Counted from the first letter of the stretch, positions 12,620-44,523 are shown. The stretch: 64,000 nt of DNA from Rebecca billardiae RCC1528 (GCA_965240325.2 OZ251233.1:868001-932000), one strand, 5' to 3'. Program-made: numbers and translations. The notes: generated by a model from the letters alone, not told the origin.

Positions 12620-15600
12620 TCAGAAGGCAGAGAAGCGCTCCCCGACCCCGCCGCCGTCCGACTCGGCGCGGCCGCCGCCGAGCTTGCTGGAGAGCGCGGG
12701 CGGCGCGCCGCCGCGCCGGAGCTCGGCGAGCTGGCCCTCAACGCGCTCGAGCTGCGCGCGCATGCGCACGACGTCGTCGGCGAGCCCGGCGCTCACGCCG
12801 CGCCGCTCCGCCTCGGCCGCGTCGTGCGCGCGCAGCTCGGCCTCGACGGCCAGCTCGGGCATCCGAAGTCCGCGCATGTCGTCGGCGAGCGCGTCGGGCG
12901 GAGAGAGCCAGAACTCGATGGCGGCGTCGCGCGCCGCCTGCGACCAGGGCGGCTGCTCGCGCATCGAGTCGAGCTGGAGGACGAGCGAGACCGCGTCGGC
13001 CGCGCCGCGCATCTTGGTGATCGCCGCGGGCGGCGGCGGCAGCCGCGCCTGCCGCCGCACGAGCGAGCCCACCGAGGAGGACGCGCTACTGCGCCGCACG
13101 CGCCGGAGTGCGGCGCCGAGGCTGGCGCGCGCCGTCGCGCCGAGAGCGCGCACGCGCGTGAGCGCGCGCATCGAGCGCGAGAAGGAGGAGACCTCGAGGA
13201 GGTCGTCGTCGTCGTCCGACGAGCCGCCGTCGAGCGCCGAGACCGAGCGCGTGAGCGAGCGGCTCGAGCGGCTCTTCGCGAGCATCTTGGCCAGCTTGCG
13301 CGCCTGGCGCGGGTGCGCGGCGCTGATGCCGCCCGCGCGGCGGCGGCTGCTGACAGAGTGCGCGCCGCCGCCGCCGCCGCCGCCCGCGCCCGCGCCGGTG
13401 CTCGAGCCGGCGACGCGCTGCGTGAGCAGCTCGCGCACCATGAGCTGGCGCACCTCCTGCGCCCACTCCGTCTCCGCGCGCGCCACGTTCTCCCTGTACA
13501 CCCCCGACACGACGGCGATGAACGTGTTGGCGAGCGCCGCGCAGCCCACCAGCGTGATGAGCGTGCTCGCCAGAAAAGGGATGAGCCCACCTGCGCGCTG
13601 CAGCGAGCGCAGGTCGGCGGCGGGGGTGAAGAAGGCGGTGAGCAGCGCGAACGAGGCGCGCGGCCACGAGCGGAACTGCGGCAGCTGGCTCGAGAAGAGC
13701 ACGTGCGCGAACAGCCCGAACGCCGCGACGACGAACAGCAGCACGAGCCCGAAGGTGTGCACGCGCGGCGCCGACAGCACCGACAACGACGCGCCCATCG
13801 CAGGGCCGACGCGCGGCAGAAGCCGGAGGAACTTGGAGAGGCGGAGCCAGCAGACGAAGCAGGCGAGGGCGACGGTGGTGCGCTGCGCGGCGAAGAGGTA
13901 CGCCACGTCGTGCAGCTCCGCGCGGTACCGCCCGTCCTCCAGGTCGAGCTCCGGCAGCATCGCCCACTCCCCGTACCATCGAAGCCGCCAGCCGGCCCAA
14001 GCGAGCAGACAGGCGAGCATGCTCAGGTCGAACAGGTCGAGGTTGAGCGTGCGCACGAGGCCGAAGCGCGCGGAGAGGGAGACGGCGCCGCCACCGCGCC
14101 GCCGCTTGAGCCGCCGCGCGCGCAGCACCGAGCGCACCGCGCGCACCGCGTACACCGCCGTCGCGAGCCCGACGATGAAGTCGAAGGCGGCGAGAAGCAA
14201 ATGCGAAGCCGAGACGGCGCGTCCCGCGCCCGAAGCGTAAGGAGCAAACATCACGACGCTCGTGGTGCGCACGGCGCCGGAGGCCTCGGGGAGCTCGACG
14301 AGCGCACGCAGCGTGATCACGCGGTGCAGCGGCTCGTTGTACAGGCACGCGAGCAGCACCACCGCGCGCGTCGACGCGTCCACCCAGCCGGACGAGGCGA
14401 GGGCGGAGAGCGCCGCGCGCGCCTCCGTGCCGTTGGCGGGCGCGAGGTCGACGGCATGCAAATCCATCCCGAAATACGAGCGGCCGATGAGGCCCTTGCT
14501 GAAGGCGGAGGCGTGCGCGGGGCCGAGGCGGTGCGCGAGCGACGCCGCCACCTCCTCCGGCGTGCGCGGCCCCGCCGCCGCCTCGCCCTCCGAGCCGCTG
14601 CCAGCCGCGCCGCCCGCGCCACCCGCCGGCGGCGGGCCCACCGCAGAGTCGTTCAGAGCGCCGCCGTCAGCCGTCGCACGCGGCAGCGGCGGCGGCTGCC
14701 CATGCGCGTGCGCGTGCGCGTGCGCATCGGCGTGCTGGGGCGCCGGCGGCTCGGCCGGGCGGTCCGCCCCGCGCTCGGCGAACCGCGCGAACGAGCGCAG
14801 CTTGTTCCAACGCGGGTCTCGGTGCGAGCCGCCGCCGCCGCCGCCGTCGTCGACGCACGCGCGGCCTCGCCCGGGCGCGGAGCAGCGCTCGCGCGCCTGC
14901 GCCACCCTGACCGCGCCGAGCAGCCGCGTGTGCATGTCGAGCTGGCCGTCGAGGCCGGCGCCGTACAGCGCGGGCAGCGCGGTGGAGAGCAGGTACGCCC
15001 ACGTGTCCGCCTCCCCCGTGATGTCCTCCCACGCGAACTGCGGCGCGCGCAGGTGCGGCGCCGGCGCGGCGGCGAGGGTGGCGCCGGGTGCCGAGCGCGC
15101 GCCGCGCGCGCCGCCGGCGCCGAGCGGCGCGCCGCCGCCGTCCGCGGCGAGGGCGGCGTCGTCGTGCGCGACGGCGACCGCGACGACCGTCGCGTCCGAC
15201 CCCTCGCGCCGCTCGAAGAGCAGGTGCTCCAGCGCGCGCTCCGCGTAGTAGTTCAGCGCGTGCGGCGACCACACCATGATGAGCGCCTGCGTCGTGAGCG
15301 CGCCGAGAAAGGCCAGGAAGGCGCCGCCGTCGACCAAAAGGTACCGCAGGATGAAGGCGCGCCGAGCGGCGCCGGCGGAGGCGGCGGAGGCGTCGGGCTC
15401 GTCGGCGCCCTCCGCGCCGCCGCCGCCGCCGCCGCCGGGCCAGCCAAACCCGCCGCGCCGCCGCGCGCCGCCGCCGCCGCCGGCTCCGGCTCGGCGCGCG
15501 TCGTCGTCGTCGTCGTCGTCCTCCCGATGGTCCTCCAGCGCTGACACAAGGAGCTCGGCGAGCTTGGCGCGGCGCGAGAGGAGCGGGTCGGCGGTGGGCT

Positions 15601-18600
15601 GCGTCGCGCTCTGCTGCTGCGCGCGCGCTGAGAGCGCGTGCAGCTGCAGCAGCCCCTGCGCGTACGCGCTCGGCCGCCGGAGCGCGAACGCCACCGACGT
15701 AACGGACGACGTAACCGACGCGCCGAGCCCGCCCTCGGCGGATGCTGAGAGCGCGCCTGCACCGAGGAGCGCGCGCACGCAGCGGAGGCGGCCGTTGCGC
15801 ACGGCGAGGGCGAGCGCGGTCCAGCCGTCCGAGTCCGCCACGTTCGTCGCGCGCGCCAGCTCCGCGCGCGGCGTGAGGCGCAGCAGCAGACCCAGCACCT
15901 CGCCGTTGCCCAGCGCGGCCGCGTAGTGCAGCGCCAGCCGGCCGCGCGCGTCCCGTGCCAAGCAGACGCTCGCGTCGGCGGGCGCGCGCGGCGCGGGCGC
16001 GAGCAGGGGCGAGACGAGCGCGGAGACCGCGTCGAGCGCGCGCGCGCGCACGCGCCCGGCGGCGCCGCCGCCCTGCGCGCCGCCCTGCGCGCCCGAGCCG
16101 CCGCCGCCGCCAGGCAGTGGGTGCGCACGCGCCAGCCTGTGCAGGAGTGTCTGCAAACCTGCGAGCGTGCGCGCGGGCGCGTCGTGCGCGCGCAGCGCGG
16201 CGCTGGCGACGGCGCCGCCAGGCGGCTGGAGCAGGAGCAGGCAGAGGTTGTACGCGCCGAGCTCGCACGCCAGCAGCAGCGGCATCTGCCGCGCGCCGTC
16301 GTGGCCGAAGGGCAGCGCAGGCCACGCCGTCGCGCGCACCGTGCCGCGCGCGCTCTCGAGCACACCGCGCACGCTCGGCGGGAGGGCCTCGCGGCGCGCG
16401 GCTGCGACGGCACCGTGCACGTCCTCGAGCGCCTGCGGTGGTCCGAGGCCCGTGCTGGAGAGCAGGTACAGGCTCGAGCCGCTCATGTCGTGCTCCTCCG
16501 CGCCACCCGCCGGCCCGCCCGCTCCGCCCGCGGCCGCCACGCCCGCACCGCCGCCAACACCGCCGCCGAGCGCGCGCGCGCGGATCGCAACCAGCTCGGC
16601 GATCTCGATGGCGCCCGTGTGCAGCGCGATGGCCAGGGCGTCGACGCCGTCGAGCACGCACGGGCGCGTGACAGACCACGCGTCGCGCGGCGGCGCGCCG
16701 CCCTCCGCCGCGCCCCGCGCCGGCAGCGCGCTGGGTGCCTCCGCGTCAGCCAGGCCCGCGCCGCCGCCCGCGCGCGCGTCAGCCGCGCCGCCGCCGCCGC
16801 CAGTGCCGCCAGTGCCGCCGAGCCCCGCGTGCGCGCGCTGCGCGTGCGCCGGGCCGAGCGCGTGTTGCGCCGCCGCGCTCACGTCCAGTCCAAGCCCGAG
16901 CATCTCCTGCACCAGCGCGAGCACCTCCGCCGGCGGCTGCCACATGGACGCGAGCTCGAGCGCGACGAAGCGTCGGATGGCGAGGACGAGACTCGGGCGC
17001 TCGTCAGGCTGCGCGGGCGGCGCGTGCCCGGTGAGGCTGGCGCTCGACGCGGCGGGGGTGGGGCCTCGGAAGGAGGCGGCGGGCGTGGCGGCGGGCACGT
17101 GCGGCGGCGGTGCCGCGCCGCCGCCGCCGGCACTCGCGCCGCCGCCGCCACGCGCGCCGCCGCCGCCGATCCGCACGCCCTCCCTGTGCGCGCGCGCGTC
17201 CGCGAGCGACACCTCCGGCGTGAAGTCCGCACACCAGCGCCACTTGGCGATGGCGACGTGCACGGCCTCCAGCGCGTCGCTCGTCGAGACGAGCTTCAAG
17301 TCCCATCGCGGCTCGGCCGAGCGGCCGTCGGGCCCGAGCCGCGGCGGACCGCCGACCGCGCGGTTGCGCGCGCGCACGAGATACGCCGCGAGCCGCGCGT
17401 GCCCGTGCGCGATCGCGTAGGAGAGCGGCCGTTGGAAGAACGGGAGTGGGCGCGTCTCGCCGCGGTCGCGCGCGAGCGGGCGCGCGCCGAGCAGGCTGAG
17501 CACCTGCAGCTCGCGGATGGTGGTGGAGCCGCGCAACGCAAAGAGCACGCGCACGTGCGCCGCGAGCACCGCCTCATCGACCGCGCCGCCAAAGCCGCCG
17601 CCGCCGGCCGCGCCGCCGCCGCCGCCAACACCGCCGCCAACGCCGCCGCCCAGCCCGACGCCCGGCAGCGCCTCGGTCATGCGGAACGTCTCGAGGTCGT
17701 GCAGCGCGCTCAGCGCGTCCGCCAGCTTCCGCGTCGCCGCGCCGCCGTGATTCCCCGCGCCGAGGTCGAGCAGCCGAAGCCCGCCGTTCTGCCGGAGGCC
17801 CTCTGCGAGGTGGGCGATGCCGCGCTCGCGCAGCGCGCAGCCGGCGACGCGCAGCGCGCGCAGCCGGCCGCGCGCCGCGGCGGGCGAGGCGAGCAGCCGG
17901 CGCAGCTGCAGCCCGCCGTCCGGGCCGAGCACGTTCCCCGAGACGTCGAGCGAGCGCAGCCGTCCGTGCGCGAGCAGGAAGTTGACCAACACCTCGATGC
18001 CGGCTGGCGTGAGGTCGTTGCGCGCGACGGATAGCGCGGTGAGCGCGCACCGGTCTCGCGCGTTGTACAGCGAGCCGACGAGCACCTCGATGCCCTCGTC
18101 GCGCGCCGCGTTGTGCGCGAGGTTGAGCGCGCGCAGACCCGTCGCGCCGCGCAGCCCGGCGCTCAGCGCGCTCACGCCGTCCACCTGCGCGTGCCCGCGT
18201 CGGCAGTCGAGCGCGGTCAGGGAGCGCATCTCGGCGGCCATTCTGGCGAGCGTCGCGAAGCCCGAGGCGTGGAGCTCGGACTGCGGCACGGCGAGGGTGA
18301 GCACGTCGACGGGCGCGTGGCGCAAGAACTCGCGCACGTACCGCAGGTGCCGCTCCGCCAGCCCGTCCGCCGAGTGCCGCAGCAGCAGCCGGCGGTAGCT
18401 CGGACGCACGAGCGGCGCCCCGCCCTCGTCGTCATGCCGCTCATAGTGGCGGCGCACGAACTCGCGCAGCCGGCTGATGGCGCGGATGAGCGCAGGGTCG
18501 GAGTCGAGCGCGCGCGCGCACTGCGGCGCGCCGTGCGAGGCCCACCACACGCGGAAGTGGGCGTATGCAGAGCGCAGCGCGAGGTACGCCCCGCGCTGAC

Positions 18601-19657
18601 CCGCCGACGGCGATGGCGGCGCGCCGCCGTCCGCGCCGCGCTCCAAGCCTCCGCCGCCGCCGCCGCCGCCGCCATCCGACGAGCGCGGCGAGGTGCGCGC
18701 GAGGTTGGCGCGGCGCGGGCTCAGCAGCGACGTCGACTGCGCGATGCGCGGCTGCGTGCACTGCAGCGCCAGGTGCGCCGCGGTCGCCGACAGGAGAGCG
18801 TTCGCCGCCGCGCGCCGCGCCGCGCCGCGCCCGCCGCCGCCGCCGTCGCCGCCATCGCCGCCGCCGCCGCCGCCATCCTCGTCCTCATCCTCGCCGCTCC
18901 CGTCCGCGTCGAAGCCAAAGTCGCCGTCGTAGTCGAGCTCGCCGTCACGCTCCACGCCGCCCTCCGCCTCCTCGCCCAGCTCGGCCGCGTCCAGCGCCGA
19001 GAGCCCCGCGGCGCCGTAGTACGCCGCCGCCTGTGCGAGCGAGTCGGTGCTGAACACGCCGCCGCCGCCGCCGCCGGCCGCCGCCGCCGCGTCGTCGTTC
19101 AGCTCCGCCTCGTCCTCGTCGTCGGCCTGCCACGCGCCGACGGGCTCGAAGTCGGCGAAGCGCAGCAGCTCCTCCGGCGGCGAAGCCTCGAAGTCGAAGC
19201 ACAGCCGCAGGTTCGGGTGCAGCGACGCCGCGGGCGCGAGCCCCTCGGTCGGCGGGAGCTGCGCGAGCAGCGGTGGCTCGAGCAATACCGCGCCGCCGCG
19301 CTCGCGCGGCCGGCGCAGCACAAAAGAGATCGTGGCGGGCTCGTTGGTGAGGTCGATGGCGACGCCGACGACGGTGCCGCGCCGCCACGTCGTCGCGACG
19401 TGCTCGTGCGCCGACGCCTGCGCCGCCTCGGCGCGCTTCGCGTGGCCCGCGTTGTGCAGCAGAAGCGCGGCGCGCGCGCGCGCGGCCGCGCCGCCGCCGG
19501 CCGGCGGCGCCGCCGCCGCGGTGGGCACCGCGCCGGCGTAACCCCACGAGAGCGCGTCGTCTCCAACGCCGGAGCCGACCTCGTACGAGCCGAAGAAGGC
19601 GCGCAGCCCGACGCCGATCGAGCCCCAGCCTCCCGTCTCGGCCGCCGCCTCGCCGCG

Positions 19658-19690
<33 letters not shown>

Positions 19691-20576
19691 CGCGGCGCGC
19701 GCGCCGGGCGCGCCGCCAGGCGCGCCGTCGGCGCGCGCGCCGCCCTCGCCCTCGGCGGCGGCGGCGTCGCCGAGCTCGAGCGCGCCCGTGTGCGCCGCCA
19801 CGGCCGAGCGCGCGCCCACGTCGTCAGGCTGCATCGCGCTCGACGAGCCCACGCCGCCCACGCTCTCGATCGCCACTTCGTAGTACCAGCAGCCCCGGCG
19901 AAGCAGCACGTCAGCTAACCGCACGCAGCACGAGTCTGCGCCCACGCACTCGACGCGGGTGCCGCGCCCGCTGGCCGTGAGCGAGGTCGCGGCGGGCTCG
20001 ATGAGCAGGTGCTCCGCGCCCGACGTCGCGACCAGCCGCGAGCTCAGCGCCATCTGCGCCGCGACGATGGGCGTGCGCAGCGAGGAGCGCTGCCCGAGCT
20101 CCGGGTGGTCAAGGGCAGAGCTCACGGCGCCGACGGCGGGCGGCAGCGCTCGCGCAAACTGCGGGCCCGTGCGCAGCAGCAGCAGCTGGGTGGAGACGAC
20201 AGGCGGCGCCGAGCCCGCGCCCTCCGCGAGCCCGGGCTCGGGCGGCGCGTGCGAGCGCGCCGCCTCGCGCACGCCCGCCGCCCACTCGGCCGAGCCCGCG
20301 GGCTCGCGCACCGCGAAGCTCGCCGCGGGTGCCACGCCCGCTCGCACGTTGATGCCTCGGAAGCCGACGAAGAAGTGCATGCGGCCGGTCGAGAGCTGCA
20401 CGCCGTACGCCATCGTGCCCGCGCCAGCGTCGATCACGCACGAGACCGGCGTGCCCGGCCGCGCGCGCAAGGCCGGCCAACCCGCCACCGGCTTGCGCGC
20501 GCCCGCGGAGGTGAGTACCATCTCTCCCGACGGCCGAATCAGAAGGCCCCACTCGCCTTCGACGGCGCCGAGCTGC

Positions 20577-20625
<49 letters not shown>

Positions 20626-23600
20626 GCGAGTGGGCGGCGCGCACGCGCGCGCAGCCCACGCTGAGGTACGCGTTCTCCCCGGGGCACTCCGCCTCAAAGT
20701 ACCACAGGCCCGCGGACAGCAGAGCCTCGGCCAGAGTCACGACCGCGGCAGTCGGCCGGCGGCCGTGCGCGGCCGCGGCGGAGCCGGGCGCGGGCACCAC
20801 GGCGGTCGCCGGCCCGCGCGAGGCGTAGGCGACGTGAACGCCCGAGTCTGGTGGCAGCTGGCCGCGGAGCTCGAGCCGCTCGCCGCCGCGCAGCGCGACG
20901 AGCCGCGCCGCCGCGGACGGGCGCGCCGCGCCGAAGAGCGACGGGCGCGCGGAGGGCGAGAGAGCACGCGCGCGTGAGCCTTCCAGCACGGAGCCGCCGC
21001 CGCCGCCCGCCGCCGCGCCGCCCGCCGCGGCGTCGGCGCGCCCCGCGTGCGGCGTGGCGCCGGTGAGCAGCGCGCGCCGCGCGCCCTCCACCACCTCCGA
21101 CAGCGGCCGCACGCCCGGCGGCGGGCCGTACCGAAACGGCACCGCGCCGAAGTTGACAAACGCCGAGAAGCCGATCTGGATCGAGATCGCCGGGATGAGG
21201 CCGTCACCCACGTCGGCCAGGTCGGCGTCGGTGAGCAGGCCCATCGGCAGGCTCGAGTCGCCGTTCAGCGAGCAGAGCAGCCGGCACCGCCCGCGCGTCG
21301 AGTCGAGCTCGCACACGCAGCCGAGCACGTCGCCCGCGCGCCACGCGCGGCCGAAAGGCGCGCGCGCCCCCTGCACCCACTTGCGCCGCTGCCCGTCGAT
21401 CGCCCACGAGCTGCGCGCCGCGCCGAGGCGCGCGCGGCGGTGCTGCTCCGCGTCGCGCGCCGCGCCCGCGCGCGCGCGCTCCGCCCCTCCCGCGCCGCCG
21501 CCGCCGCCTCCCTCGCGCAGCAAGAAGGGCGTTCCCACCCATCCGACGCGCGCCGCCCCGAAAGGCGAGACAGAGCACAGGGCGACCTCGTAATAATACG
21601 CGCCCGAGCGCACGAGCACGCCCTGAGGCACGAGGAGCGGCACCGAGCCGGCGGGCGCGCGCACGAGCCCGCCCGCGAGCATCAGCACCGAGCGGCCCTC
21701 GGGAGCCGTCAGCTCGCCCACCGACGTGAGGCCGCGCGGCGCGACGATCGACACCAGCGTGAGCAGCGCGGACGAGCGCGCGCCGTGCGCCGCCGCCGCC
21801 GCCGCGCGCGCCGCCGCGCCGCCGTCGGCGTCGTCGGCGGTGGCGTCGTCGGCGGGGCCACCGCGGGCGTGCGCCGCGCGCGCCGACGCACCCGCCGGAG
21901 GCAGCGCCGCCGCGCTGCTCAGCTGCGCGAGCAGCCCGGCGTGCAGCTCGGTGGAGACAGCGAGGCCGCCCGCGCCGCCGCCGCCCGCGCCGCCGCCCCC
22001 AACACCCATGCCGCCCGCCGCGCGCTCGGCCGAGGCGATCGAGAGCGCGGCGCCGGAGCCGCGGCGCACGGCCGCGAGCGGGACCACCGCCTTGCCGCCC
22101 GCGCCCGCGCCGAGCAGCGCGACCGTCGAGCGGCGGCGCGCGCGGTTCGGGAGGACGAAGATGTGCGATGGGGCGCGCCGCGCCAAGGATGCGCCGGCGC
22201 CGCCACCGTGCAGCCCCCCGGCGGCGGCGGCGGTGGCGAAGGCGGCGGCGAAGGCGGCACCGGCGTGGTGCCTGCCGAGCGCGCGCGCGCTCGGCGAGCG
22301 GAGCAGCAGCGCGCCGCCGCGCCCGCCGCCGCCCGCCCCCAGCAGCGCGCGCGGCTCGGAACCCTCCGCCTCTCGCGCGGTCGCGAGCGCAATGGCACGG
22401 GCGAGAACGCGCGACGTCACATCGACATCGAGCAGGCTGGTCGCGTGCTGCTGCTGCTGCTGCTGCTGCGCCGCAGTGCCGCTCGAGGCGCGCGGGCGCA
22501 GCAGTCCGTGTCGCGAGCTCGGGCCTCCGGACGGCCGCTCCGCTCCGGCGTGCTCCCGCTCGGCGGCGCCGGCGGCGTCGTCGGCCGCGCCGACGGCGAC
22601 GACGGCGGCTTGGCCCGAGTCTGCCGCGACGCGCACCGCCACCTCCACGAGCGCCGAAGCCTTCTCGGCCGAGCGCAGCACGCGGGCGAGCGAGGCCTCG
22701 GCGGCGGCGCGTGGCACCAGCGTATGCGCGCCGTCGGCGCGCGCGACCACCTCGCGCGCCGCGCCGCCGCTCTCGAGCAGCACGCGCCGCGCGAGCGCCG
22801 CGGCGCGCGCCTCCGCGCCCTCCGCGCCCTCGGGCTCAGCGCCGAGCTCAGCCGCCCCCGAACCCGCCGCGCCGTCCGCGGCCTCTGCGTCTCGCGCGCG
22901 CGCGCGTAGCGCGGACGCGAGCAGCTGCGAGCGTGCCGCGCGGCCGCCGCGCACCAGGGCTGGCCGCGAGGAGCGCGAGTGCGAGCCCTCCGCCGCGTCC
23001 GCTGCGAAGCCGACGCCGCGCGGCGGCGCGCGCGCGCCCGTGTCGCCCGCCGCGGCGCGCACCGCCGCATCGGCCGCCGCGGCCGCCGCGGCGGACGTCG
23101 AGCCGCGGCGCGTGCGCTCGAGCGCGTGCGCCGCTTCGCGCAGCAGCGCGGCCTCAGCGGCGCTCTGGAGCACGAGGCACGGCTCGATCGGCAGGCCGGC
23201 GCTCGGCGAGCCGCCCGCGCCGACGCCCGCGCGCCGGTGGCCGCGCGCGCACAGTGCAAACGCGCGCGCGCGCGTCGCCGGCCGCACCTCCGCGAGCCCA
23301 TGCAGTATCGCTTCGGCCTGCCACTCGGCGGGGTAAGGGTCGGCGGACGCGAGGGCGCCGAGCAGCGAGAGCGCGACGCGCACGCGGCTCGCCGGCTCGA
23401 GCCGCGCCGCGGGTGGCGCCAAGCCGCGGCCCGCGCCTCCGCCGGACGAGCTGGCCTCACCCTCAGCCGAAGCCGCTGCTGCCGCCGCCGCCGAGCCGCC
23501 GAGCCGCTGCGCGCGCAGCGCGGGCGGCATGCCGCGTGCGCCGCGCGCGCCCGCCGCGTCCGCGCCGCCGCCGGCGGCGGCGCGCGCAACGTCGTGCCTC

Positions 23601-24206
23601 GCGGCGCGCAGCGCGTGCGGCGGCTGCATCGGCTCCGAGCTGAGCAGCCGCTCGCCCGACGCCGACAGCAGCTCGAGCGTCGGCCTGCCGTGCGTGCGCG
23701 CCCACGCGCCGGCGAGCAGCAGAGCGCCCTTGATGCACGCGCCCTCGTCCAGAGTCACCGCCGCCGCCTCCACCTCCTGAGCGACGCCGGCGGCGCCGGC
23801 GCCGGCGCCGCTGTGCTGCGCGCCCGGCGCGCCCCCGCCGCCGCCGCCGCCCGCCGCCGCCGCCGAGCGCCAGACGAGCGCGACGCGCGCGGGCCGAAGC
23901 CGCCTCGGCAGGTCTGAGCCCGCCTCCGCCCTCGTCACAAAGTTGGGCGACAGATAGATGCCGGCCAGCGGGCGGCGGAGCTCGGCGGCGGCGGGCGCGA
24001 GCTCGTCCAGCAGGCTGAGCGGCACGAAGCGCGAGCCCGGCGCAGCGGTGAGGTGGCCGACGGACGGCGGCGTGAAGAGTGCCCACTGGCGCATGTGACG
24101 CCGGCGCCAGCGCGCGAACAGCCGCGTCGGCGCCGACGGCGGCGCGCCGCCCGGCTCATCGCCGCCGGATTCGATGGCGGCGCCGAGGTCGCTCACGCCG
24201 CCGCCC

Positions 24207-24237
<31 letters not shown>

Positions 24238-24269
24238 TCGCCGCCTCGGGCCCGCCGCCGCCGCCCGGC

Positions 24270-34000: not shown

Positions 34001-34125
34001 GGCAGCGCGCGCACGTACGCGCCCACCACGCCGCCGCCGGGCAGGTTGTGCTCCGCATGCGCCGGCACCCACCGCGCCGCGCCGCCGCCCGCGCCGCCCT
34101 CCCCGCCGCCCTCGCCGCCGCCCTC

Positions 34126-34186
<61 letters not shown>

Positions 34187-36238
34187 GCGCACAGGTCGGC
34201 GCACAGCCTGCGCGCGCGCGCGCGCTCGCGCGCCGTGAGCTGCGCCTCCTCGCTCAGCATCCCCGCCAGCTCGTCGAGCCGCTCGAGCTCGCGAGGCGCG
34301 TCGATGCGCGCGCCGAGGCCGTGCGAATCGCAGTCGGCGCACGCGAGAAGCAGCCTCAGCTTGAGCGAACAAAAGTCCGGGTGGTGTCCGGGGTGCTCGA
34401 GCAGGTTGGCGAGGATGGCGGCGCACACCTCGTCGAGCGGCGTGCTACTCGGTAGCAGCTCGACCAATCGGTGCGCCTCCGCCCACCGCCCCGCGTACGC
34501 GTACACGCACATCAGGTAGAGCGTCGCGCGCGTGTCCGCCGGAAGCAGCGCCGCTCCGGAGTCGTGCACCGGAATAAAGAAGCAGCGCACCGCCGAGCGC
34601 ACGGCGCGGCGCCACTCATCGGCGGGCTCGGAGAGCGGCGCGGCGCGCGCGGCGTGCAGCGCGCTCGGCGTGTCAAAATCATAGTCGGCGCACACCGGCA
34701 GCCCGCCCACCCGCCGCGCGACGAGCCGCTCCGCGCCCAGCACCATCGTCAGGGCGCCGTCGTCCGCCTGCAGGAAGACGCAGTGCCGGATGCCGTGCGC
34801 GAGCGCGCGCAGCCCCGGTGCCGCGCCCCAGTCCGGCAGCAGGAAGGCGCCCGCGTGCTCGCGGCACTGCAGCCGGTGCTCCGAGTCAGACTCGAACGAG
34901 AGACCGGCGTGCGCGAGCTGCACGAGCGACACCTCGACCAGAGGGCCAGACCCCATACGCTCGGCGTCCGCGGCCGTGCGACTGTCTACGATCGAGCGCG
35001 ACCACACGAGGACGTGCGAGGCGCAGCCGGCGGTGAGGCGCGCGAGGTGGCGGACCAGCGTGTCGCACAGCCCGCCGCGCGGCGTGCGCGTCGTGTCGAG
35101 CAGCGTCAGAACGCCGTCGCCGCCCAGCCCCGCCGCGTGCACCTCGCGCGCGCGGCGCGCGCCCGCGGGGCCGTGCGCCGCGCCCGGCGCCGCGGCGGTC
35201 GAGTCTGTGTGGGGAGATGCAATCTCGCGCGCCTCGTGGTACGGGACGAGGTGGACGAGGGCGAGCGCGCCGGACGCGCGCGGCTCGTGCGCGCGCGCCG
35301 AGCCCGCCGACTCCGCGCCCGCCGCGAGCCGCCGCCCCGCGCCCTCCGCGCCGCCGCCACCCGCGTCCGCCGCGTCCCCCGCGCCTTCGCTCTCGCCTTT
35401 GGCCGTGAGCTCTGCCGGCGCCAGCGGCAGACACTCGATCAGCAGGCAGCGGTCTGAGAACCACTCGCGGCCGAGCGGCGAGATGGAGCCGTGCGCGCTG
35501 AACTCGTGCACCTCGGCGGCGCGCTGTGCGCGGTGGTAGTCCGCGCGCACGAAGCCCCACAGCAGCGTGTGCGCCTCGTGCGCCGGCAGGCCGTCGGCGC
35601 CGCCGTCCGCGCCGCCGTCCGCGCCGCCGTCCGCGCCGCGGGCGCCGCCGCCGCCGCCCGCGCCGCCGCCCGCGCCGACCGCCGCGCGCCGACCGCCGCG
35701 CGCGGCGGCGGCGGCGGCGGCGCCCGCGGCCCCACCGCCCGCGCGCGCGTCCGCGCCGCCTCCCTCGTCCCTCCACACGTCGAACACCTCCAGCAGCGCC
35801 GCGGGCAGCAGGCCGCAGAGTGTCGCAGTGGGCACGTACGCCTGCGCGCGCGCGTGCAGCCGATGCGCGTCGCGCACCGCCTGCGGCATCCGCTCGCCGA
35901 GGCGCGCGAGCGCGAGCTCCTGCGAACGGCGCTGCGTCTCAGTAGTCTCGCGCGTGATCACCAGCTCCGAGCCGCGCGGCGCGTGCGCCGCGCCGCGCGC
36001 GTCAAAGTAGGGCAGGAGCGGCGCGCCGCGCGCGTGCCGCATCGAGCTGAGACGCGGCGCCTGCGCCATCGCGAGGGGCTCGAGCGCCGCCTGCTCGACG
36101 TGGAAGAGGCCCGTGTCGCACAGCCCGTGCGACGCGCTCGCGTCCGAGGTGAAGACGAGGCAGCGCTGCAGCGACGGCCCCCACCAGTGCAGCAAACAGA
36201 TCTCGAGCAGCGGAGATTGGTGCGCGCGAGAAACTCTC

Positions 36239-36273
<35 letters not shown>

Positions 36274-39200
36274 GCCGTCCTGGTCAGAGCCGCCGTCCGC
36301 CGCCGCGGCGCCGAGCGCAAAGGCGACGTTGGGCGCGGCGCCGGGCGTGCGCGGCGCGCCGAGCGCGCGCCGCACCTCCAGGAAGAGCCCCGGCTTGGGC
36401 AGCCGCGGCCCGCTCGCGTACAGCAGCACGGGCGGCCACTCCTGCCCATCAGAGGCCGCCGCCGCGTCCGCGCGCGGCGCGGCCGAGTCGGCGGCGCCGC
36501 CGCCGCCGCCGCCGTCGCGCGAGGCGGCGGCGGCGGCGCGCGGCACCGCGCCCTGCCGCACGAAGACGTCGGGCACGCCGTCGAGCGAGGCGATCCACGC
36601 GGTCTCGGCGAGCAGCGGCGCCAGCTCGTCCGCGACCCAGCCCAGGCCGGGCAGCGGCGCGCCGTCCGGCCGCGTCGGTCGGAGCAGGGCGACGCCAGAG
36701 CTCACGGCGTGCTGCAGTGACGGGCTCGCACCCGCCGGCCCTGGCGGCACGAGCTCATGCCGAGTGTACTGCACGCCGCCCCACGCGAGCGAGCCGTCTG
36801 TGAGCTGCTCGATTTGGTTCAGCCCACGCACGCGGTCCAAGCCGCCCAGCAGCCGCTTGCCGCCGCCGGCGGCGGCGGCGGCTGTGGCTGCGGCTGTGGC
36901 AGCGGCCGACGCCGCGCCGTGATGAGCGCCAGCCGGGCTGGCGAGGGGCGGGGCGCGCTGCGCGCCCTCGCGCGCGCAGCGCGGCGCGCCCGCCGCCGCG
37001 CCGCCGCCGCCCTCAAAGAAGCTGCGCACGGTGCCCGCGCGCGCGATCGTGCGCACGCGCCCGTGTGTGCCGTGCGAGTGCGCGAAGCTGCGCGCGGCGT
37101 CGACGACGGCCCCGGCCTCCGCGTCGCTCAGCGGGCGCGCGCCGTGCGACGCCACGACGTCCTCGAGGTCGCGCTCGGTGAGCGAGCCGAGCGCGGCGGG
37201 GTGCGTCAGCTCCTCGCGCGCGAGTGCGTCGCACACGCGCGCCGCGAGCGCCGCGGCGTGCGCGCGCCGCGCCGCGCCGTCCGCGGGCGCGCCGAGCAGC
37301 GCGCGCGGCGCCGCGCCGAGCGCGCGCGGCGCCGCCGCGGGCGCGCCCGCGTCCGCGTCCGCGTCCGCGTCGCTGTCTCTGTCCGCATCGCCCTCGCGCG
37401 CGTGCGAGCGCTTCGGCGCGGCGGCCCACGTGTCCTCCGCCTTGGGACGCCGGCGCGCGCGCGACGGCCGCGCCGCCTCCTCGGCCGCCGCCGCGTCCGC
37501 CGCCTCCGCCGCGCTCGACGCCTCGAGGGCGGCCGCGAGCGCCCTATACAGCTCGCGCGAGCCCAGCCGCCCGCGCCCGCCGCCGCTGCCCGCCTCGGCC
37601 GAGCCCACGTCCTCCGCGGTGGCGAGCTGCGCGAGCAGAGCTTCCTGCGCGATGGCGGCGAGTAGCACCGACGGCTCCGGCGGCGGCGGCGGTGGCCACA
37701 CCTCGACAGTCGCGGAGCTCGCGCCTTCACTCGCGTGCGCGAGCGCGTACGCCGCCGCGCGCCGCGTGTTGCACCCGAGCCGCACGCACGCCGCGGGCGC
37801 GGCGCCGAGCGCTCGCGCAAAGTCAACGGCGTACGCCACCTCGGCGGGCAGACGCGCCGAGCCCGCGCCGTGCCGCGTCACGTGGCACGCGTGCAGGTCT
37901 ACGAGCGCGCCGCCGCGCCGCTCGAACACGCCGGACGCGCGCGCGCTCGCCTCCCGCCGCGCCGCTCTCTCCAGCAGCTCGGCCGAGTCAGCGAGCAGGT
38001 AGGCGCGCGCGTGCGCGCGCACAAGTCTCTTCTCGGCGAGCGCGTGCGCGCACATCAGCCGCGCCTGCCGCCGCGGGATCGCGGCGAGCAGCGCGTCCAC
38101 CTCGGGCTCCCGCTGGAGCGCCCTGACGAGATTGCGCGGGATCGGCGCCTCGGCGATCAGCTCGAAGCCGATCTCGACGTCGGAGATAGCGGAGGCGTCG
38201 AGGGCGGGTGGTGGTGGCGGCGCGGCGGCGCCGAGCGGGCCGGGCGCGCCGCCGCCGCCGAGCGCGCCGCCGAGCCCGGCGCGCGCGCCGCCGCCGGCCG
38301 CGCCGCCGAGCCCTCCGCCAAACGCGAACGCGCCGTGCGCGCCGCCGCCCGGCGCGCGCTCGCTCGCCCGGAACTCGACGAAGAAGCGATCCGCCGGGAT
38401 GACGAGCGGCGGCGCGCCGCGCGTGCCGGGCCAAGAGTGCGCCTCGCCGTCGCCCCAGCGCGCGCGCGGCCCCCAGTGCTCCATGCGCAGCCTGTCCTTC
38501 CACAGCGTGAGCCACGCGCCGCGCGGCAGCTCGGTGCGTGGGTCGAAGCTCAGCACCACGTGCGACGCGCCCTCGAAGCAAACCTCCTCGAGCAGCGTGC
38601 AGCACGGCGGGAAGGTGCGCTCTGTGCGCCAGCCAGGCGAGGACAGTGCCTGGCGCGACGCGGGCGCGCGCGACGGCTGCAGCCGCCACGACGCGAGGTG
38701 GCGGCCGCCGAGCGTGGCGGGCGCGCGCGGCCGGCGCGGCGCGCCCGGCGCGCCCGCCGACCCGCCGCCGCCGCCGAGCGCGCCGCCGCCGCCGCCAGCC
38801 GCAGCGTCGGCGTTCGAGCCGGCATAGCGGTGCACCGTCGTGGCGCCGTCGTCGTCGTCCGCGCCGAGCGCGCCGCCGCCGTCGCTGCGGTCGTCGAGCT
38901 CGCTCTCCGACGGGCTGCCCTCGCCGTTCTCGTACGCGCCGCCGCCCTCGCCCAAGCCGCGCTGCGCGGCCAGCTCGCGCGCGAGCGGACTTCCCTCCTC
39001 AGCGCCTCCCTCGTCGTCGCTCACGCCGCCGCCGCCGCCGCCGCCGCCGGCCGCGCCGCCGCCGCCGCGCGGCTCGCCGCCGCCGCCGCCGCCGCCGCCG
39101 CGCCCGCCGTCCTCCGCCGCGCGGCGCAGCGCCACCGCCTCCACATAGTCGAGCATGCGCGCGCACTCGGGCCGCGCAGACTTGAAGAGATGCTCCGCGT

Positions 39201-40930
39201 GCGCGCACGCGAGCGCGCGCTGCCGCCTGTGTAGCCGCGCGCTCGGAGCCGCGACGTGCCACGGCGCGCGCGCGCGCTCGTCGTCCACCCAGGCCTGGAC
39301 GAATGCGATCGAGGCGAGCACCTGCGAGAGCGAGTCTGTGAGGTGCTGCGCGGCGGCGGCGCCCGCCGCCGCCGCGCCGCCGCCGCCGCCGCCGCCGGGC
39401 TCGGCGCCGCCGCCCTCGTCGCCGCCGCGCGCCGCGCCGCCAGCCTCCGCCTCCGCGGCTGGCTCGCGCAGCGTGTGCGCGAGCGCGGCGGCGAGCGCCG
39501 CGTGCACGCCGAGCAACCGCTCGAGGTCGTCCTCCGCGTCCGCGCGGTGGCTCCACTCGAGCAGCCGCGACGCCCCGTCCACGAGCCACGCGCGGAGCCC
39601 CGCAAGCAGCTCGGCCGCACTCGGTCCGCCCGGCCGCGCCGAGCGGTGCGAGTCCCAGGCCACGCCGCCCGCGCGCTCGCGCGCCGCGCTCGCGCAGCGC
39701 TCGACGTCGGCGGCGAGGCTGACGGCGAAGACGAACGCCGCGGCGCGCGCGTGCGCGTAGTCCGCCGCCGGCGCGGCGGCGCGCAGCGCGGCGCACAGCT
39801 CGAGCAGCGGGCGGAGCAGCGCGCACGGCGAGCGCTCGAGATCGGAGGCCAGAATCCCGAGGGGCGTGGCGAGCAGCAGCTGGCGCGCTGGCCCGTCGGT
39901 CGGCGGGACGGAGGCCCAGGGGGCGCCGCCGTCGGCACCGCCGTCGTCCGCGCCCGCCGCCGCCGCCGCCGCCGCCGCCGCCTCGGCGGGCGAGCGCGTG
40001 TCCGCCGCGAGCGGCTCGAAGAGCGCCCGGCGCAGCAGCGCACGGAAGGTCGGGTGTGCGAGCAGCGCGTCCCGCGCGGCGAAGAACTCGAGCAGCAGCG
40101 GGAGCGAGACGAAGGGGGCGGAGAGGAGGGCGAGCAGCGTCTCGGTCTCGTCGAGGGAGAGCCTCTCCAGCGGCCGCGCCACGTTCAGCGCGCGCGCCTC
40201 GACCAGCACCGCCTCCGCGCCCGGCACGCCGTCGCCCAAGCCCTCCTCAACGCCGGCGCCGGCGCCGTCGTCGTCGTCCGCGCCGCGCAGCGCCCGGAGC
40301 GCGCGCGACACGCGGCCGCGCACGTGCGAGCGCCACGCGGCGGGCGCGCCGACAAGCGCGGGCACGGCGGGCTGCCCGCCGAGGCCGACGCTCAGGCTCG
40401 CGCCGTCCGGCCCGACGCGCCACGCGGGCGCGAGCGCCGACGCGTCGAGCGCCGGGCTCGCGAGCGCGCGCGCGTTCGCGCGCCGCAGCGCGGCGCTCGG
40501 CTCGAGCAGCAACTTGACGAGACTGACCATGTCGCGGGCCAGGCCGAGCTCGGGCGCGTCGGTCGCGTCCCAGTTGGCGCACAGCCAGCGGCACGCGCCG
40601 CCGAGCGGGGACGAGCGCACCGCGGGGCCGCCGGAGGACGCGGCGGCGGAGGGCGCGCCGCCCGCAGCCGCGCTGCCGGGCGCGCCGCCGCCGCCGCCGC
40701 CGGGCGCGCCGCCCGCGCCGCGCGCGCCGCGCGGCGGCGGCGGCGGCGGCGGCGGCTCGGCGCCTACGGGCACGCCGATGCGCGCGAGCACGGCGCGCAC
40801 GAACGCGAGCGTCTCGTCGTTGCGCTCGGGCGCGAAGCGCAGCTCCAGCCCCTCGCCGGGCGCGCGGCGCGGGCCGCCTCGCTCGCGCAGCGGCACCGGT
40901 ACGAACCCAAACAAACAGCCGTCTGAGGCA

Positions 40931-40981
<51 letters not shown>

Positions 40982-41317
40982 GCGGCGGCGCCGCCGGCGG
41001 CGCCGGCGAACTCCGACTCGCCCAGGTAGCGCAGCGCGCGCAGCCGCAGCGCCGCCGAGTCCGGGTCGACGACGGGCGAGGTGGCCAGAATGTCCTGCAG
41101 GCCAAGGCCGCTGAACGCAGACGCTGAGAGCGCCAGCGGAGCCGGGAGGCCGTCGCCGTTGAGCAGCGCGCACACGGCGGACTGCGCGCCGCCGAGGTCG
41201 AGACGCGCCGCGCCGCCGCCGTCGCCGTCGGCCGCGCCGCCGCCGCCGCCGGGCACGCCAACGCCGCCGCCGCCTCGCGCGCGCCCCTGCGCGCCCGCAC
41301 CGCGCTCCGCCATCCGC

Positions 41318-41350
<33 letters not shown>

Positions 41351-42756
41351 AACGCTGCCGCCACCGCGGCCGCCACGTCCTCCCCGTGCGCGGCGCCGGC
41401 GCGCGCGTGCCGCGCGGCGCCGCCCGCCGCCGCGGCCGCGCTCGCCTTCGCCCGCGACGGCCGCATCCTGAGCACCGCGTCGAAGAGCGCCAGCATGGCC
41501 GCCGCGCACACGCGCCTCTCCCCTTCGCGCTCAGCGAGGCCCGAGTCCGCCTCCTCGTGCGACTCGCCGTCGGGCTCCTCGCCGTCCGCGCCGGACTCGG
41601 CCTCGGCAGCGGCGCCGCCCGCATCCACGCCGCCGCCGCCGCCGCCCAGAAACCGCCAGTCCTCCGCCGTCACGCACAGGCTCGCGCTCGCGTACGCGCG
41701 CGCAACAGCCAGCAGCAGCCGCAGGCAGCGCCGCTGGTCGACGACTGACTGCAGGTTGTCGAAGGGCGCGGCGCTGCTCGCCGTCCATGGCTCCGGCAGC
41801 GGCAGCGTGCGTGCGAACAGGTCCTCTGCGCGCCGACCGGCCCGGGGGCAGAGCGCAAGCACGCACGCACGCACACGCACGCACACGCACGCACACGCAC
41901 ACGCACACGCACGCACACGCACACGCACGCGCACGCGCACGCGCACGCGCACGCGCACGCGCACGCGCACGCGCGAGCAGCGCACGAACAAAAGCACAGC
42001 CACAAGGAGAAGAAGACAGCACCGCCCAAAGGGTAGGGTCGGGTGCGGCACGACGCGTGAGGACGAGCGCACGCGCGCAGCCGCAGCAGCCGCAGCAGTA
42101 CGGCGCGCGCGCACGCGGCAGCAGCATGGAGCGCGCGCGCACGCGGCCGCGCGCGGCGCACCGATCAGCACGACGACCTGGGCTCGGGCGACGCTCGTCG
42201 GGAGTCCGGCTGTGCTGATCCGGGTGACCGCCTCCTCGCACCAGCGGAGCGAGTCGAGCAGCAGCGCGAAGCTCCAGCGCGGCGCGGGCGCGCGCAGCCC
42301 CGCCGCCGCGCGCCCGCCGCCGCCACTGCCGCCGCCGCGCGCGCGCGCACCCGCGCCGCGCGCGCCGCCGTCCGGCCGGTCCCACCGGAGACCGCCACCG
42401 CCGTCCGCGCCCGCCGCGCCCGCGAGGTGGCCCTCGAAGACCGCGCCCTGCGCCACGCCCATCCCCTCCGCGCGCGGCTGCGCCGAGAGCAGCGCGCCGG
42501 CGTACGCGCCGCGCGGCCGCGCGTCCGCCACCAGCCCGAACCGGGCAAACGGCCGGTAGCACTCGACCAGAGCATATCGCTGCGCGGCCGCGGAGCGTGG
42601 CGCGGCGAGGGCCCAGCCCGCAGAGCCGCCGAGTGCGGGCAGCGGCGGCGGCTGCGCGAGCCCGTCCTCCGTGAGCGGCAGCGCCATCACCGCGGGCAGC
42701 AGCGTCTCCGTGAGGAACGAGGCGAGGGAGGATGACCGAGCCGCAGGCACGGCGGC

Positions 42757-42787
<31 letters not shown>

Positions 42788-42929
42788 GCGTCGGGCTCGG
42801 CGGCGCCGGGCATGAGGGCGCGCTCGAGCGCCGCGTCCTGCTCCGCGCGCAGCAGCTGCGCGCACACGCTGCGCAGCAGCCACTGCTCCGCCCGGTGCAC
42901 GCCCCCCGGCAGCGAGCCGCGGCAGCTGC

Positions 42930-42970
<41 letters not shown>

Positions 42971-44523
42971 AGAAGCAACGATGCGTACGCGTGCGCGCCG
43001 TCGTCCGCGCGCGTGAGCGCGCGGCAGATGCGGCAGTCTCGGAGCACCGCGCCGAGCTCGAGCGCGCCGAGCTCCGCGCGCACGCGCGGCACCTCCGCGC
43101 GGGCGCGCACCGCGCCCACCGCGTGCAGCGCCAGTGCAAAGGACACGAGGACCGTCTCTCGGGACACCGCGCCCTCGGCGAGCGCTCGCGGCCGCGCGCG
43201 CGCGAGCGGGAGCAGCCGGGCGCTGCGCGCGGCCTCGGCGTCGACGGCGGCGCGCAGCGTGGGCGCACCGTCGGCCGAGGCCAGCGCGCCGCCCGCCGCG
43301 AGGTGCGGCAGCAGCACCTCGTACGCGTACGCCTCGGAGCGCACGGGCGCGCCGCGCAGCGCGAGCACGGACGTTTGTAGCAGCGACAGCAGCGCGCCCG
43401 CGTCCAGGCACTCGCGCGGGCCGCGGAACGAGATGGCGATCTCGTACAGCACGGCGCCGGCGGCGCCGTCGAGCGCCGCCGCGTCCGCGTCGTCGTCCGC
43501 CCCGCCCGCCGAGCTGCCAGAGCCCCGGCTGGCAGAAGAGCGCCGCCGCACGGCCGGCGCGCGCGTGGACGGGTGGTATCGGAGCGCGCCTGGGCCGCCC
43601 GCGTTGACGAAGGTGTACAGGAGCTCGTCGGGGGCGGCGGCGTCGGCGGCGGCGGCGGGCGTGCCCGAGGACGAGCGCGCGGCCCCCTGCGCCGGCGGCG
43701 TCGGCTGCGCGTGCGCGTGCGGCGGCGCGGGCGCGGCCGAGCGCGGCGGCGCGCGCTGCACTAGCAGCAGTCCTTGGAAGGGGCCGCGGCCCTCCGAGTC
43801 CACGAGCATCAGCGGGAGGACGACGAGCCCCGCGGGTGCGGCGGGCTCGGGCGAGGCGCCCGCACGCCGGCTGGGCGGCGGGCTCCTCGGCGGCGAGCCC
43901 AACGCGAAGAAGGGCGGCGGCGCGGCGCCGGGCGGCGGCGCGAGCAGGCTCTCGACGTCAGCGTGCGCGGCGCTCAGCACCGCCGCAAGCTCCTGGTGCA
44001 TGCGGCCCTCGACGGAGGCGCTCGCCGAGCGGATGGCGCTCGCGTACCGCGTCGCGCGCTCGAACGCGTCGAGCGCCGCGCGCGCCGCCCTCCGATCCAC
44101 GGAGAGTCGGCTGCGCAGCGCCGCGTGGCTGCCGCCGCGCAGCTCGGGCGCGACGGCACTCAGCAGGGACTCGAGCTCGATGCCGGCGGTCGCCTGTGCG
44201 GTGGAGGCGGCGAGGCCGGGCGTCGCGCCCGTGTACGCGGGGAACATCTGGAGGAACGTCGGCGAGCGCCACACCGGCGCCCACTCCTTGCGCACGCGCA
44301 TCACCAGCTTTGCCTTCCGCTCGACGATCGGGCCGAGCGGCGTACTGTCGGGAAGCTCCCAGCGGCACGGGTCGTCCTCGGCGCAGATGCGCTGGTACTC
44401 GGGCGGGACGACGGGCACCTTCTCGAACAGCTTCGCCTTCAGGTCGCGCACCGTGCGCCCCTGGCCCAGGTCGAGCGTCACCTCCCGGCCCGGCGTCGCC
44501 ACGCGCACGCTGCTCGTCGCCAT
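12620..44523 (-). CDS. Giant multidomain protein (~10,470 aa): Ubl - CUB-like - FN3/RRM - DUF3638/DUF3645 helicase-like P-loop - SCP2-like - 3x SPRY - LRR - ankyrin - polycystin/TRPP channel. Exons 44523-42162, 41825-31807, 31648-12620
   Basis: ATG 44523, stop at 12620. A phase-0 GT-AG intron joins the two long ORFs. Motifs: TVRDLKAKL..PPEYQRI (Ubl); FDPRFLAFE..QLGAGEGKTSVLAPLLALLLADG; LVDEVD; LLAVPFEGKDTPALRSEFAVPDV; ALIDAGAL; GAWRLRSLGAGQ; YYYEV..GW..SWAIDG..WRAGDVLGC..NFG (SPRY); LxxLxLxxN LRRs; GWTALALAVRNGRLRCVRALLGAGA (ANK); RLLGAVRVAQAR, WVDASTRAV..LYN and a series of hydrophobic helices (PKD2-like). Confidence 0.85.
28001..28090 (-). repeat. (GGC)n coding trinucleotide tract, about 30 Gly
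   Basis: gccgcc... run of ~90 nt on +, the longest of many poly-Gly tracts in the giant gene. Confidence 0.9.
31649..31806 (-). other. Predicted 158-nt GT-AG intron joining the 4348-aa and 6394-aa ORFs
   Basis: Minus strand CTG GCG|GTGTGC...GCTCAC...GCGCGCAG|TGG CGC. The donor falls on a codon boundary of the upstream ORF and the acceptor on a codon boundary of the downstream ORF, giving DMRSLA|WRSPDD. Confidence 0.8.
41826..42161 (-). other. Predicted 336-nt in-frame, stop-free intron containing a (GTGCGC)n/(GTGT) microsatellite
   Basis: ATC G|GTGCGC...GCGCGCAG|AG GAC. Removal eliminates RVRVRVRV/ACACAC low-complexity translation and gives VVVLIEDLFARTLPLP. Confidence 0.85.

Follow-up and report, generated by a model that had tools for sequence, protein, structure and literature searches.

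The sequence considered here is a 64,000-nucleotide stretch of the Rebecca billardiae RCC1528 genome (GCA_965240325.2 OZ251233.1:868001-932000), referred to below as the window, in which positions are counted from the first letter. Its minus strand carries what we predict to be a single giant gene, encoding a helicase-like ATPase and a polycystin-type channel in one chain. The whole coding region (12620..44523, minus strand) runs from an ATG at 44523, in the context gccatcATGgcg with AT-rich sequence upstream, to a TGA at 12622-12620, beyond which the DNA is again AT-rich. A scan of the window for open reading frames (ORFs) found two very long ones in this region, ORF2 (31498..44544, minus strand, 4348 codons) and ORF1 (12620..31804, minus strand, 6394 codons), which splicing would join into a product of 10,581 amino acids (aa) with intron 1 removed, or of 10,469 aa and 1,045 kDa with introns 1 and 2 removed. 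An earlier interpretation made from the bases alone (hereafter the sequence-only reading) had likewise turned two giant ORFs into one 10,469-aa coding sequence by removing two GT-AG introns; the ORFs and the product size held when recomputed, and intron 2 is a prediction only. Residue numbers below follow the one-intron model of 10,581 aa unless stated otherwise. In order, the predicted chain consists of an N-terminal region of ~4,600 residues, the ATPase, a linker, two SPRY domains and a probable third, leucine-rich repeats (LRR), ankyrin repeats (ANK), a six-transmembrane (6-TM) channel with a TOP domain, and a putative short coiled coil, so that all other named modules except the coiled coil precede the S1 helix of the channel.

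Chance ORFs in other frames of the gene region are long too, reaching 1649 codons. Under a composition-only model with one stop per ~110 codons, an open run of 6394 codons has log10 P = -25, and the longest open run in shuffles of exon 2 was 1280 codons. The gene region has a G+C content of ~80%, compared with 61-70% in its flanks, and G+C falls sharply to AT-rich intergenic DNA at both gene ends, with no comparable fall inside the gene. Along the joined frame, G+C at third codon positions (GC3) is 0.86-0.97 in all 300-codon bins over 31.7 kb, with second positions at 0.56-0.75, which is an unbroken coding signature along these 31.7 kb.

The two giant ORFs are joined in frame by intron 1 (31649..31806, minus strand), a predicted intron of 158 nucleotides (nt) that begins with GTGTGC and ends with a polypyrimidine tract and AG. 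Up to 31807 the ORF2 frame has a GC3 of 0.98, and from 31648 the ORF1 frame has the same value; across 31648-31499, GC3 is 0.98 in the ORF1 frame versus 0.80 in the ORF2 frame, this relation is reversed over the 300 nt that precede 31807, and the 158 nt in between have no clear codon-position periodicity. Because the frame preference flips at these borders, the splice sites of intron 1 mark the point of the frame switch. The joined gene could nevertheless be an artefact, either of the gene model, with one protein ending at the ORF2 stop and a second starting from the ATG at 31495 or from internal starts, or of a chimeric assembly. A two-cistron reading is permitted by TGA-cg-ATG at 31493-31500 (minus strand), where two bases separate the ORF2 stop (31500-31498) from the in-frame ORF1 ATG at 31495, and the predicted protein of this gene had no self-match in the protein collections searched. 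However, the ORF1-frame signal is already present upstream of that ATG and the ORF2-frame bias stops at 31807, no intergenic-type dip in G+C occurs inside the gene, homologues described below have a single chain that contains the N-terminal region together with ATPase and channel, and the ATPase and the channel lie in one ORF whatever the splicing. We consider an artefact very improbable. The stop-restart reading of TGA-cg-ATG was itself rejected, as codon-position composition favours a position inside exon 2 and a merely coincidental motif.

A candidate intron 2 (41826..42161, minus strand; 336 nt, GTGCGC...AG, phase 1) is stop-free and in frame and is the only stretch with a GC3 below 0.8; its in-frame removal is predicted to be likely. 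It contains a (GCGTGC)n / (GT)n-like microsatellite of ~130 nt (41860-41990, minus strand), and if retained it would lengthen the protein by 112 residues, some of them forming a false 'transmembrane' stretch. Both introns begin with GTG[CT]GC (31801-31806 and 42156-42161), a motif that may represent the consensus for 5' splice sites in so GC-rich a genome.

The first ~4,600 residues contain no recognised domain. The absence of a Pfam match here is a weak negative, since hmmscan is unreliable on such long biased pieces and its outcome depends on how the Ala/Gly-rich protein is cut: a SPRY domain found at E = 1e-9 in a 3,394-aa piece was lost in a 3,599-aa piece and returned in 900-aa pieces. 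At the very N terminus, a ubiquitin-like fold (aa 6-46; 44386..44508, minus strand) is suggestive only, as the match to PF00240 (E = 0.0023, 18.1 bits) falls below the 25.4-bit cut-off. Further along, a conserved patch at aa 3169-3400 (34324..35019, minus strand) is common to other DUF3638 giants, and BLASTP detected two more at aa 1453-1506 and 1943-2050 (40006-40167 and 38374-38697, minus strand). No Pfam family could be assigned to the conserved patch, and an Atlas search with it gave nothing interpretable. All three patches lie in exon 1 and match, in the same order, regions upstream of the ATPase cores of the homologues P0026, P0160, P0162, P0001 and P0117 (BLASTP). The joining of the two ORFs is thus independently supported, because the exon-1 patches are collinear with what precedes the ATPase in these homologues.

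The ATPase core (aa 4740-5900; 26666..30148, minus strand) resembles superfamily 2 (SF2) helicases and is interrupted by long Gly/Ala-rich inserts. DUF3638 (PF12340; aa 4765-4911; 29633-30073, minus strand) scores 83.1 bits against a gathering score of 31 and is followed by an inserted DUF3645 (PF12359; aa 5332-5364; 28274-28372, minus strand) with 47.7 bits against 25, both therefore exceeding the Pfam gathering scores. Sequence motifs mark Walker A (G-A-G-E-G-K-T; 29933-29953, minus strand) and Walker B (D-E-V-D; 29387-29398, minus strand), and alignment of family members places the second RecA-like half at 26681-27076 (minus strand). When this core is aligned with seven relatives (alignment A1, eight rows), a Q-like L-R-x-x-Q lies ~25 residues before the G-x-G-K-T of motif I, which is followed by the D-E-x-D of motif II and then by the DUF3645 block L-A-V-P-F-x-G-K-D-x-P, G-F-S-G-T-P (motif III), H-T-T-G-x-D and Q-G-A-W-R-M-R-G-L-G-x-G-Q. 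With the motif VI pattern Q-x-x-x-R-x-R, the alignment contains the SF2 motifs Q-like, I, II, III, V and VI in order, and G-x-G-K-T and D-E-x-D are retained by all aligned family members. These motifs are the main ground on which we interpret the ATPase as a probable SF2 helicase-like motor of two RecA halves, with DUF3645 inserted in the first. In the Atlas, the core falls among DUF3638/DUF3645 clusters, one of which has SecA, ResIII/DEAD and SNF2 motors as structural neighbours; the ATPase-core profile had no match among PDB sequences. DUF3638/DUF3645 giants of fungi and protists are often automatically named 'ubiquitinyl hydrolase 1'. The mechanism of DUF3638 was described as undefined in a 2025 paper (PMC12615304).

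Downstream of a linker of ~1,600 residues come the modules that separate the ATPase from the channel. SPRY 1 (aa ~7590-7750; 21116..21598, minus strand) was found by Pfam and matches a ryanodine-receptor SPRY domain among PDB sequences at E ~6e-8; SPRY 2 (aa ~7886-8022; 20300..20710, minus strand) was found by Pfam and family matches, and the best solved relatives of both are ryanodine-receptor SPRY domains. A third SPRY domain (aa ~8140-8400; 19166..19948, minus strand), carrying an acidic low-complexity insert, is probable: it had no Pfam or PDB match of its own, and it shows by eye the motifs G-C-W-Y-Y-E-V, S-W-G-Y and G-T-V-V-G-V-A-I-D-L and matches residues 970-1418 of P0012, a homologous SPRY-LRR-ANK-channel protein, in a downstream region that is separately SPRY-positive. 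The LRR (aa 8661-8885; 17711..18385, minus strand) are of the RNase-inhibitor/NLRP type (RNase inhibitor E = 3.5e-15, NLRP14 ~1e-7, LRR_6 in Pfam), and the ANK (aa 9469-9538; 15752..15961, minus strand) were identified by both Pfam and PDB sequences.

The channel (aa 9672-10292; 13490..15352, minus strand) is polycystin-2-like, with S1, a TOP domain, S2-S6 and a pore loop; profile alignment places the extracellular TOP/polycystin domain between S1 and S2 at 14207-15271 (minus strand). PKD_channel (PF08016) reaches 33 bits against a cut-off of 22.4 bits, and polycystin-2 was aligned over 344 residues in the PDB sequence search. Polycystin_dom (PF20519), at 19.4 bits, is under its cut-off in this copy and over it in P0026, P0012 and P0013. 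Used as a profile together with eight relatives, the channel gave a match (E = 1e-56) to PKD2L1 and polycystin-2 that covered the TOP region and extended as far as S6. The S4-S5 motif P..GP and the S6 motif L-x-N-x-F-I-A-V...Y are conserved, and hydropathy indicates membrane-type helices only in the C-terminal part of the protein, the one exception being the junk translated from intron 2. At the pore-filter position, this copy reads F-F-T-P-A-A-D (13613..13633, minus strand), where the family and PKD2L1/PC2 have (L/F)-G-D-(F/W)-D; there is a one-residue indel at the filter, and the alignment of the loop is uncertain. The AlphaFold single-sequence model of the channel is poor, with a predicted local distance difference test score (pLDDT) of 42. 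After the channel, a helix at aa 10526-10550 (12716..12790, minus strand), in which we read by eye a 3-4-3-4-3 hydrophobic heptad spacing and which is helical in a low-confidence model, may form a short C-terminal coiled coil.

The domain map drawn in the sequence-only reading was thus reproduced almost to the base by the Pfam and PDB searches for DUF3638, DUF3645, SPRY 1 and 2, the LRR, the ANK and the channel. Its third SPRY domain is accepted only on motifs and family matches, its coiled coil only on the heptad spacing read by eye and the helix of the low-confidence model, and its N-terminal ubiquitin-like domain is hinted at in the proposed place by a score that falls short. Its claim that the ATPase and the channel are fused independently of splicing stands, because both lie within the single 6394-codon ORF.

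The fusion recurs in other organisms. When the channel region was used in an exhaustive search, many long proteins were retrieved that have a channel at the C terminus; a word-indexed search had given no giant proteins, probably because it was swamped by low-complexity words. P0026, a 7,876-aa EukProt entry from the chrysophyte Epipyxis sp. PR26KG, has the order DUF3638-DUF3645-EF-hand-SPRY-LRR-ANK-Polycystin_dom-PKD_channel. The Epipyxis genome has 34% G+C, and its published gene models were built with RNA hints (PMC7954800), P0026 itself being the EukProt entry. The same content and order are found in P0117 (7,425 aa), from a Logan assembly. The best channel match, P0003, is encoded on L007, a metagenome contig of 33.6 kb with 59% G+C, where consecutive same-strand ORFs encode DUF3638/DUF3645, SPRY, LRR and then an ANK-EF-hand-polycystin channel, and these ORFs are collinear with aa 4747-10313 of the Rebecca protein (tblastn). 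The L007 homologue is divided among five ORFs, with frame changes a few bases apart at 2416-2455, 8952-8955 and 9998-10001, which could be due either to very short introns or to indel errors in the assembly; because one frame change falls inside the RecA2 domain, the ORFs are pieces of one gene. In homologues, EF-hands lie between the ATPase and SPRY or beside the channel, and none was detected in the Rebecca copy. These three independent collinear homologues bear out the ATPase-channel fusion proposed in the sequence-only reading. A single-protein scan of metagenome loci found no relatives.

A tree was built from 106 domains of polycystin-like channels, that of the Rebecca protein among them. 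One of its clades (20 rows, SH-aLRT 96) unites the four fused members with six of the seven SPRY-bearing fragments and includes dinoflagellate, pinguiophyte and chrysophyte sequences. P0117 groups with sequences of the dinoflagellates Prorocentrum/Polarella, Tripos and Polykrikos (support 100), and P0026 with Pinguiococcus and metagenome sequences (support 100). The branch of the window's channel is long and compositionally deviant, and its exact place within the clade is unsure. A single origin of the fusion is compatible with this tree, not proven by it, and the simplest reading of the clade's shorter rows is that they are C-terminal fragments of similar genes. Because the layout is collinear in three other sources and the channels form one supported clade, we conclude that the fusion is real and old rather than an artefact. 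The sequences retrieved gave no sign of a lineage-specific expansion. PKD channels acquired large N-terminal extensions on more than one occasion, as shown by two other large polycystin-channel fusions, from diplonemid transcripts, that fall outside the clade of the ATPase fusions: P0034 (Sulcionema specki, 3,378 aa), which has ANK, a BTK motif and a ubiquitin domain, and P0045 (Diplonema japonicum, 3,352 aa).

DUF3638 giants without a channel also exist, namely P0002, which is complete on its contig, and P0160 with its neighbouring ORFs. The channel-bearing form is therefore a single branch within a more extensive family of modular giants. Another Logan protein, P0001 (6,406 aa), is a DUF3638/DUF3645 giant with one SPRY match, no channel seen and a ~4,000-residue N-terminal region collinear with that of the Rebecca protein; it may belong to the same family and be truncated.

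Based on these findings, the explanation we favour, with a probability of roughly 60%, is that one gene encodes one giant protein of ~1.05 MDa, belonging to a conserved and undescribed family, which would act as a tetrameric channel with ATPase-coupled gating. By comparison with TRP (transient receptor potential)/polycystin channels, the chain would tetramerise via its channel, possibly helped by the C-terminal heptad helix in the way that coiled coils act in polycystin-2. Because membrane helices are only C-terminal and given the topology of TRP channels, the ~9,670 residues of each subunit before S1 would be cytosolic. Four arms, each with an ATPase motor, would then lie beneath one pore in an assembly of ~4.2 MDa, a 'chanzyme' on a scale comparable to that of the ryanodine receptor and exceeding it. 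The SPRY, LRR and ANK modules may bind partners or neighbouring subunits, and ATP binding or hydrolysis would remodel the cytosolic assembly and thereby gate the channel. The coupling might also run in the other direction, with ion flux through the pore setting the ATPase activity, and the EF-hands of homologues suggest a possible Ca2+ feedback. We further speculate, tentatively and as something possible rather than probable, that a SecA/DEAD-like ATP motor is mechanically coupled to the TRP-family pore in a ~4.2-MDa ATP-driven or ATP-licensed channel conserved in haptophytes, ochrophytes and dinoflagellates.

A number of observations weigh against this explanation. The gene, both introns and the single chain are predictions from DNA sequence, low-complexity Ala/Gly/Arg/Pro-rich sequence makes up ~63% of the chain, and the modules could be separable by an internal promoter or by proteolytic cleavage. 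Motif III of the ATPase is degenerate in this copy, reading L-S-A-A-A-P where the family has G-F-S-G-T-P. The AlphaFold model of the ATPase, built from the eight-row alignment, is weak (pLDDT 51), and Foldseek searches with it against solved and predicted structures (the latter being models of reviewed proteins) reached a best E of only ~0.2. VIA-align Z-scores of 8.0-8.7 for DEAD-box RecA2 and 7.5-7.7 for RecA1 are near the tool's background level. Among the top PDB matches at E ~0.2, almost every one is an SF2 helicase (Dicer, Hel308, Hera, CSB, MDA5), and SF2 helicases also recur at the top of the predicted-structure matches at E ~0.2 (reverse gyrase, PRP28, SecA), such that the structural support for an SF2 fold, drawn from these models, is weak but consistent. 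The coupling between the ATPase and the gate is pure inference. Finally, the filters of this copy (T-P-A-A-D) and of Epipyxis P0026 (G-N-S-Y) lack the canonical acidic G-D-x-D, so that conduction, including any Ca2+ permeation, is putative; selectivity may differ, or the domain may be mainly an anchor.

The last of these points invites a different explanation, in which the channel domain is a non-conducting anchor and tetramerisation platform and the protein is a membrane-tethered DUF3638 machine whose motor and SPRY/LRR/ANK modules act on a cytosolic substrate. The channel-like half of polycystin-1 is often viewed as such a non-conducting platform. Besides the two divergent filters, this explanation draws on the channel-less DUF3638 giants P0002 and P0160 (with its neighbours), which are of similar size and N-terminal layout; because they exist, the ATPase machine appears to work without a pore. 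On the other hand, the TOP domain, the S4-S5 linker, the pore helix and the S6 gate motif are all kept across distant lineages, which is more than an anchor needs, and the canonical G-D-x-D filter is retained by the clade members P0117, P0003 and P0013. We think a mere anchor unlikely, and prefer a putative conducting channel.

The order of the modules also recalls innate immunity. The protein could be an executor of immunity or cell death, in which the LRR or SPRY modules sense a viral or non-self ligand, the NTPase switches and the channel collapses ion gradients. The order of an NTPase followed by LRR, and an LRR of the RNase-inhibitor/NLRP class, are as in nucleotide-binding leucine-rich-repeat receptors (NLRs) and related STAND (signal transduction ATPases with numerous domains) proteins; some plant NLRs form pores, and the weak structural neighbours of the ATPase include SF2 motors that sense nucleic acids, such as RIG-I, MDA5 and Dicer. 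Haptophytes, chrysophytes and dinoflagellates are, as is generally known, hosts of large viruses. The NTPase, however, has SF2 features and not those of a STAND/NACHT/NB-ARC switch, and neither NACHT nor NB-ARC had a Pfam match in any piece of the protein. PADLOC defence-system models did not match the ATPase cores of this protein, P0117 or P0026, and Pfam searches of the protein found no death-fold, TIR or nuclease module. Moreover, the collinear unit is kept in four independent sources with no lineage-specific expansion among the sequences retrieved, and the protein would have a built-in TRP channel rather than an induced helical funnel. An immune role is therefore improbable, and because the ATPase has ordered SF2 motifs in place of a STAND/NLR switch, the resistosome analogy is only loose.

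The functional interpretation in the sequence-only reading was consequently right in part. Its architecture stood, and its proposal of an NTP-switch-gated channel like an NLR or resistosome did not, given the SF2 motifs of the P-loop module, the absence of NACHT/NB-ARC matches and the lack of defence-model matches. Its other proposal, a giant Ca2+ signalling scaffold, fits somewhat better in view of the EF-hands of homologues; the pore filter of this copy is non-canonical.

The giant gene is flanked by genes that provide an ordinary nuclear gene context. Domain matches identify ORFs for an aspartyl protease (Asp/TAXi; 4490-6136, plus strand), a Fringe-like/DUF604 glycosyltransferase (8161-10080, minus strand), a kinesin motor (52144-54348, minus strand) and a flavin monooxygenase (55507-57537, plus strand), and the ORF scan found a further ATG-initiated ORF at 49645-50994 (plus strand).

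Should an ATP motor indeed be coupled to a pore, channel control would have a new principle, and the DUF3638/DUF3645 giants would gain their first functional handle. Conserved megadalton ATPase-channel fusions in ecologically dominant algae would constitute a new type of channel-enzyme; the fusion would place the widespread DUF3638/DUF3645 proteins in the context of membranes and ion flux, and would allow one to ask, in a tractable way, whether a channel gate can be driven or licensed by an SF2 motor. Giant genes of this kind are broken or missed by automated annotation, as indicated here by the lack of a predicted protein in the protein collections searched and by the relatives in those collections, most of which are C-terminal fragments.

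Full-text literature searches, including polycystin/TRP terms combined with algal groups, found no description of a helicase-like ATPase-TRP/polycystin fusion, in agreement with the sequence-only reading, which knew of no such architecture. The few papers that name DUF3638 or DUF3645 bear unrelated titles, and those consulted refer to DUF3638 only briefly. We suggest that the protein represents a new conserved architecture built from known parts, with a function that is predicted. It shares with the DUF3638/DUF3645 giants of fungi and protists the same ATPase core and a similar long N-terminal region, and differs from those that were examined for a channel (P0002, and P0160 with its neighbours) in having one. 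To polycystin-2 and PKD2L1 (TRPP) it is related through a homologous 6-TM channel, with a TOP domain, an S4-S5 linker, a pore helix, the S6 motif and a C-terminal coiled-coil-like helix. Those proteins, however, have 700-1000 residues and short cytosolic ends, whereas here ~9,670 residues, including an ATPase, precede S1; this copy is also without the canonical L-G-D filter, and the channels of the fused proteins form a clade of their own.

Two further systems are comparable by analogy. The ryanodine receptor likewise has a giant SPRY-bearing cytosolic part before a C-terminal 6-TM tetrameric cation channel (the channel here being predicted), without homology of the whole: Pfam found no RIH, RyR-repeat or RyR/IP3R-type pore domain in the Rebecca protein, only SPRY being common to both, and the pore here is of the polycystin type and accompanied by an ATPase motor, which the ryanodine receptor does not have. 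Ligands, voltage, Ca2+ and lipids are known to regulate TRP and polycystin channels, as are kinase or Nudix domains fused to them. The TRP chanzymes (TRPM6/7 with an alpha-kinase, TRPM2 with NUDT9-H) combine, as this protein would, a TRP-superfamily channel and an enzyme in one chain, and TRPM2 chanzyme structures are among the distant matches of the channel profile. Their enzyme is a C-terminal kinase or Nudix domain, in contrast to an SF2-like ATPase that lies N-terminal to the channel and thousands of residues away from it, in a protein 5-10 times larger.

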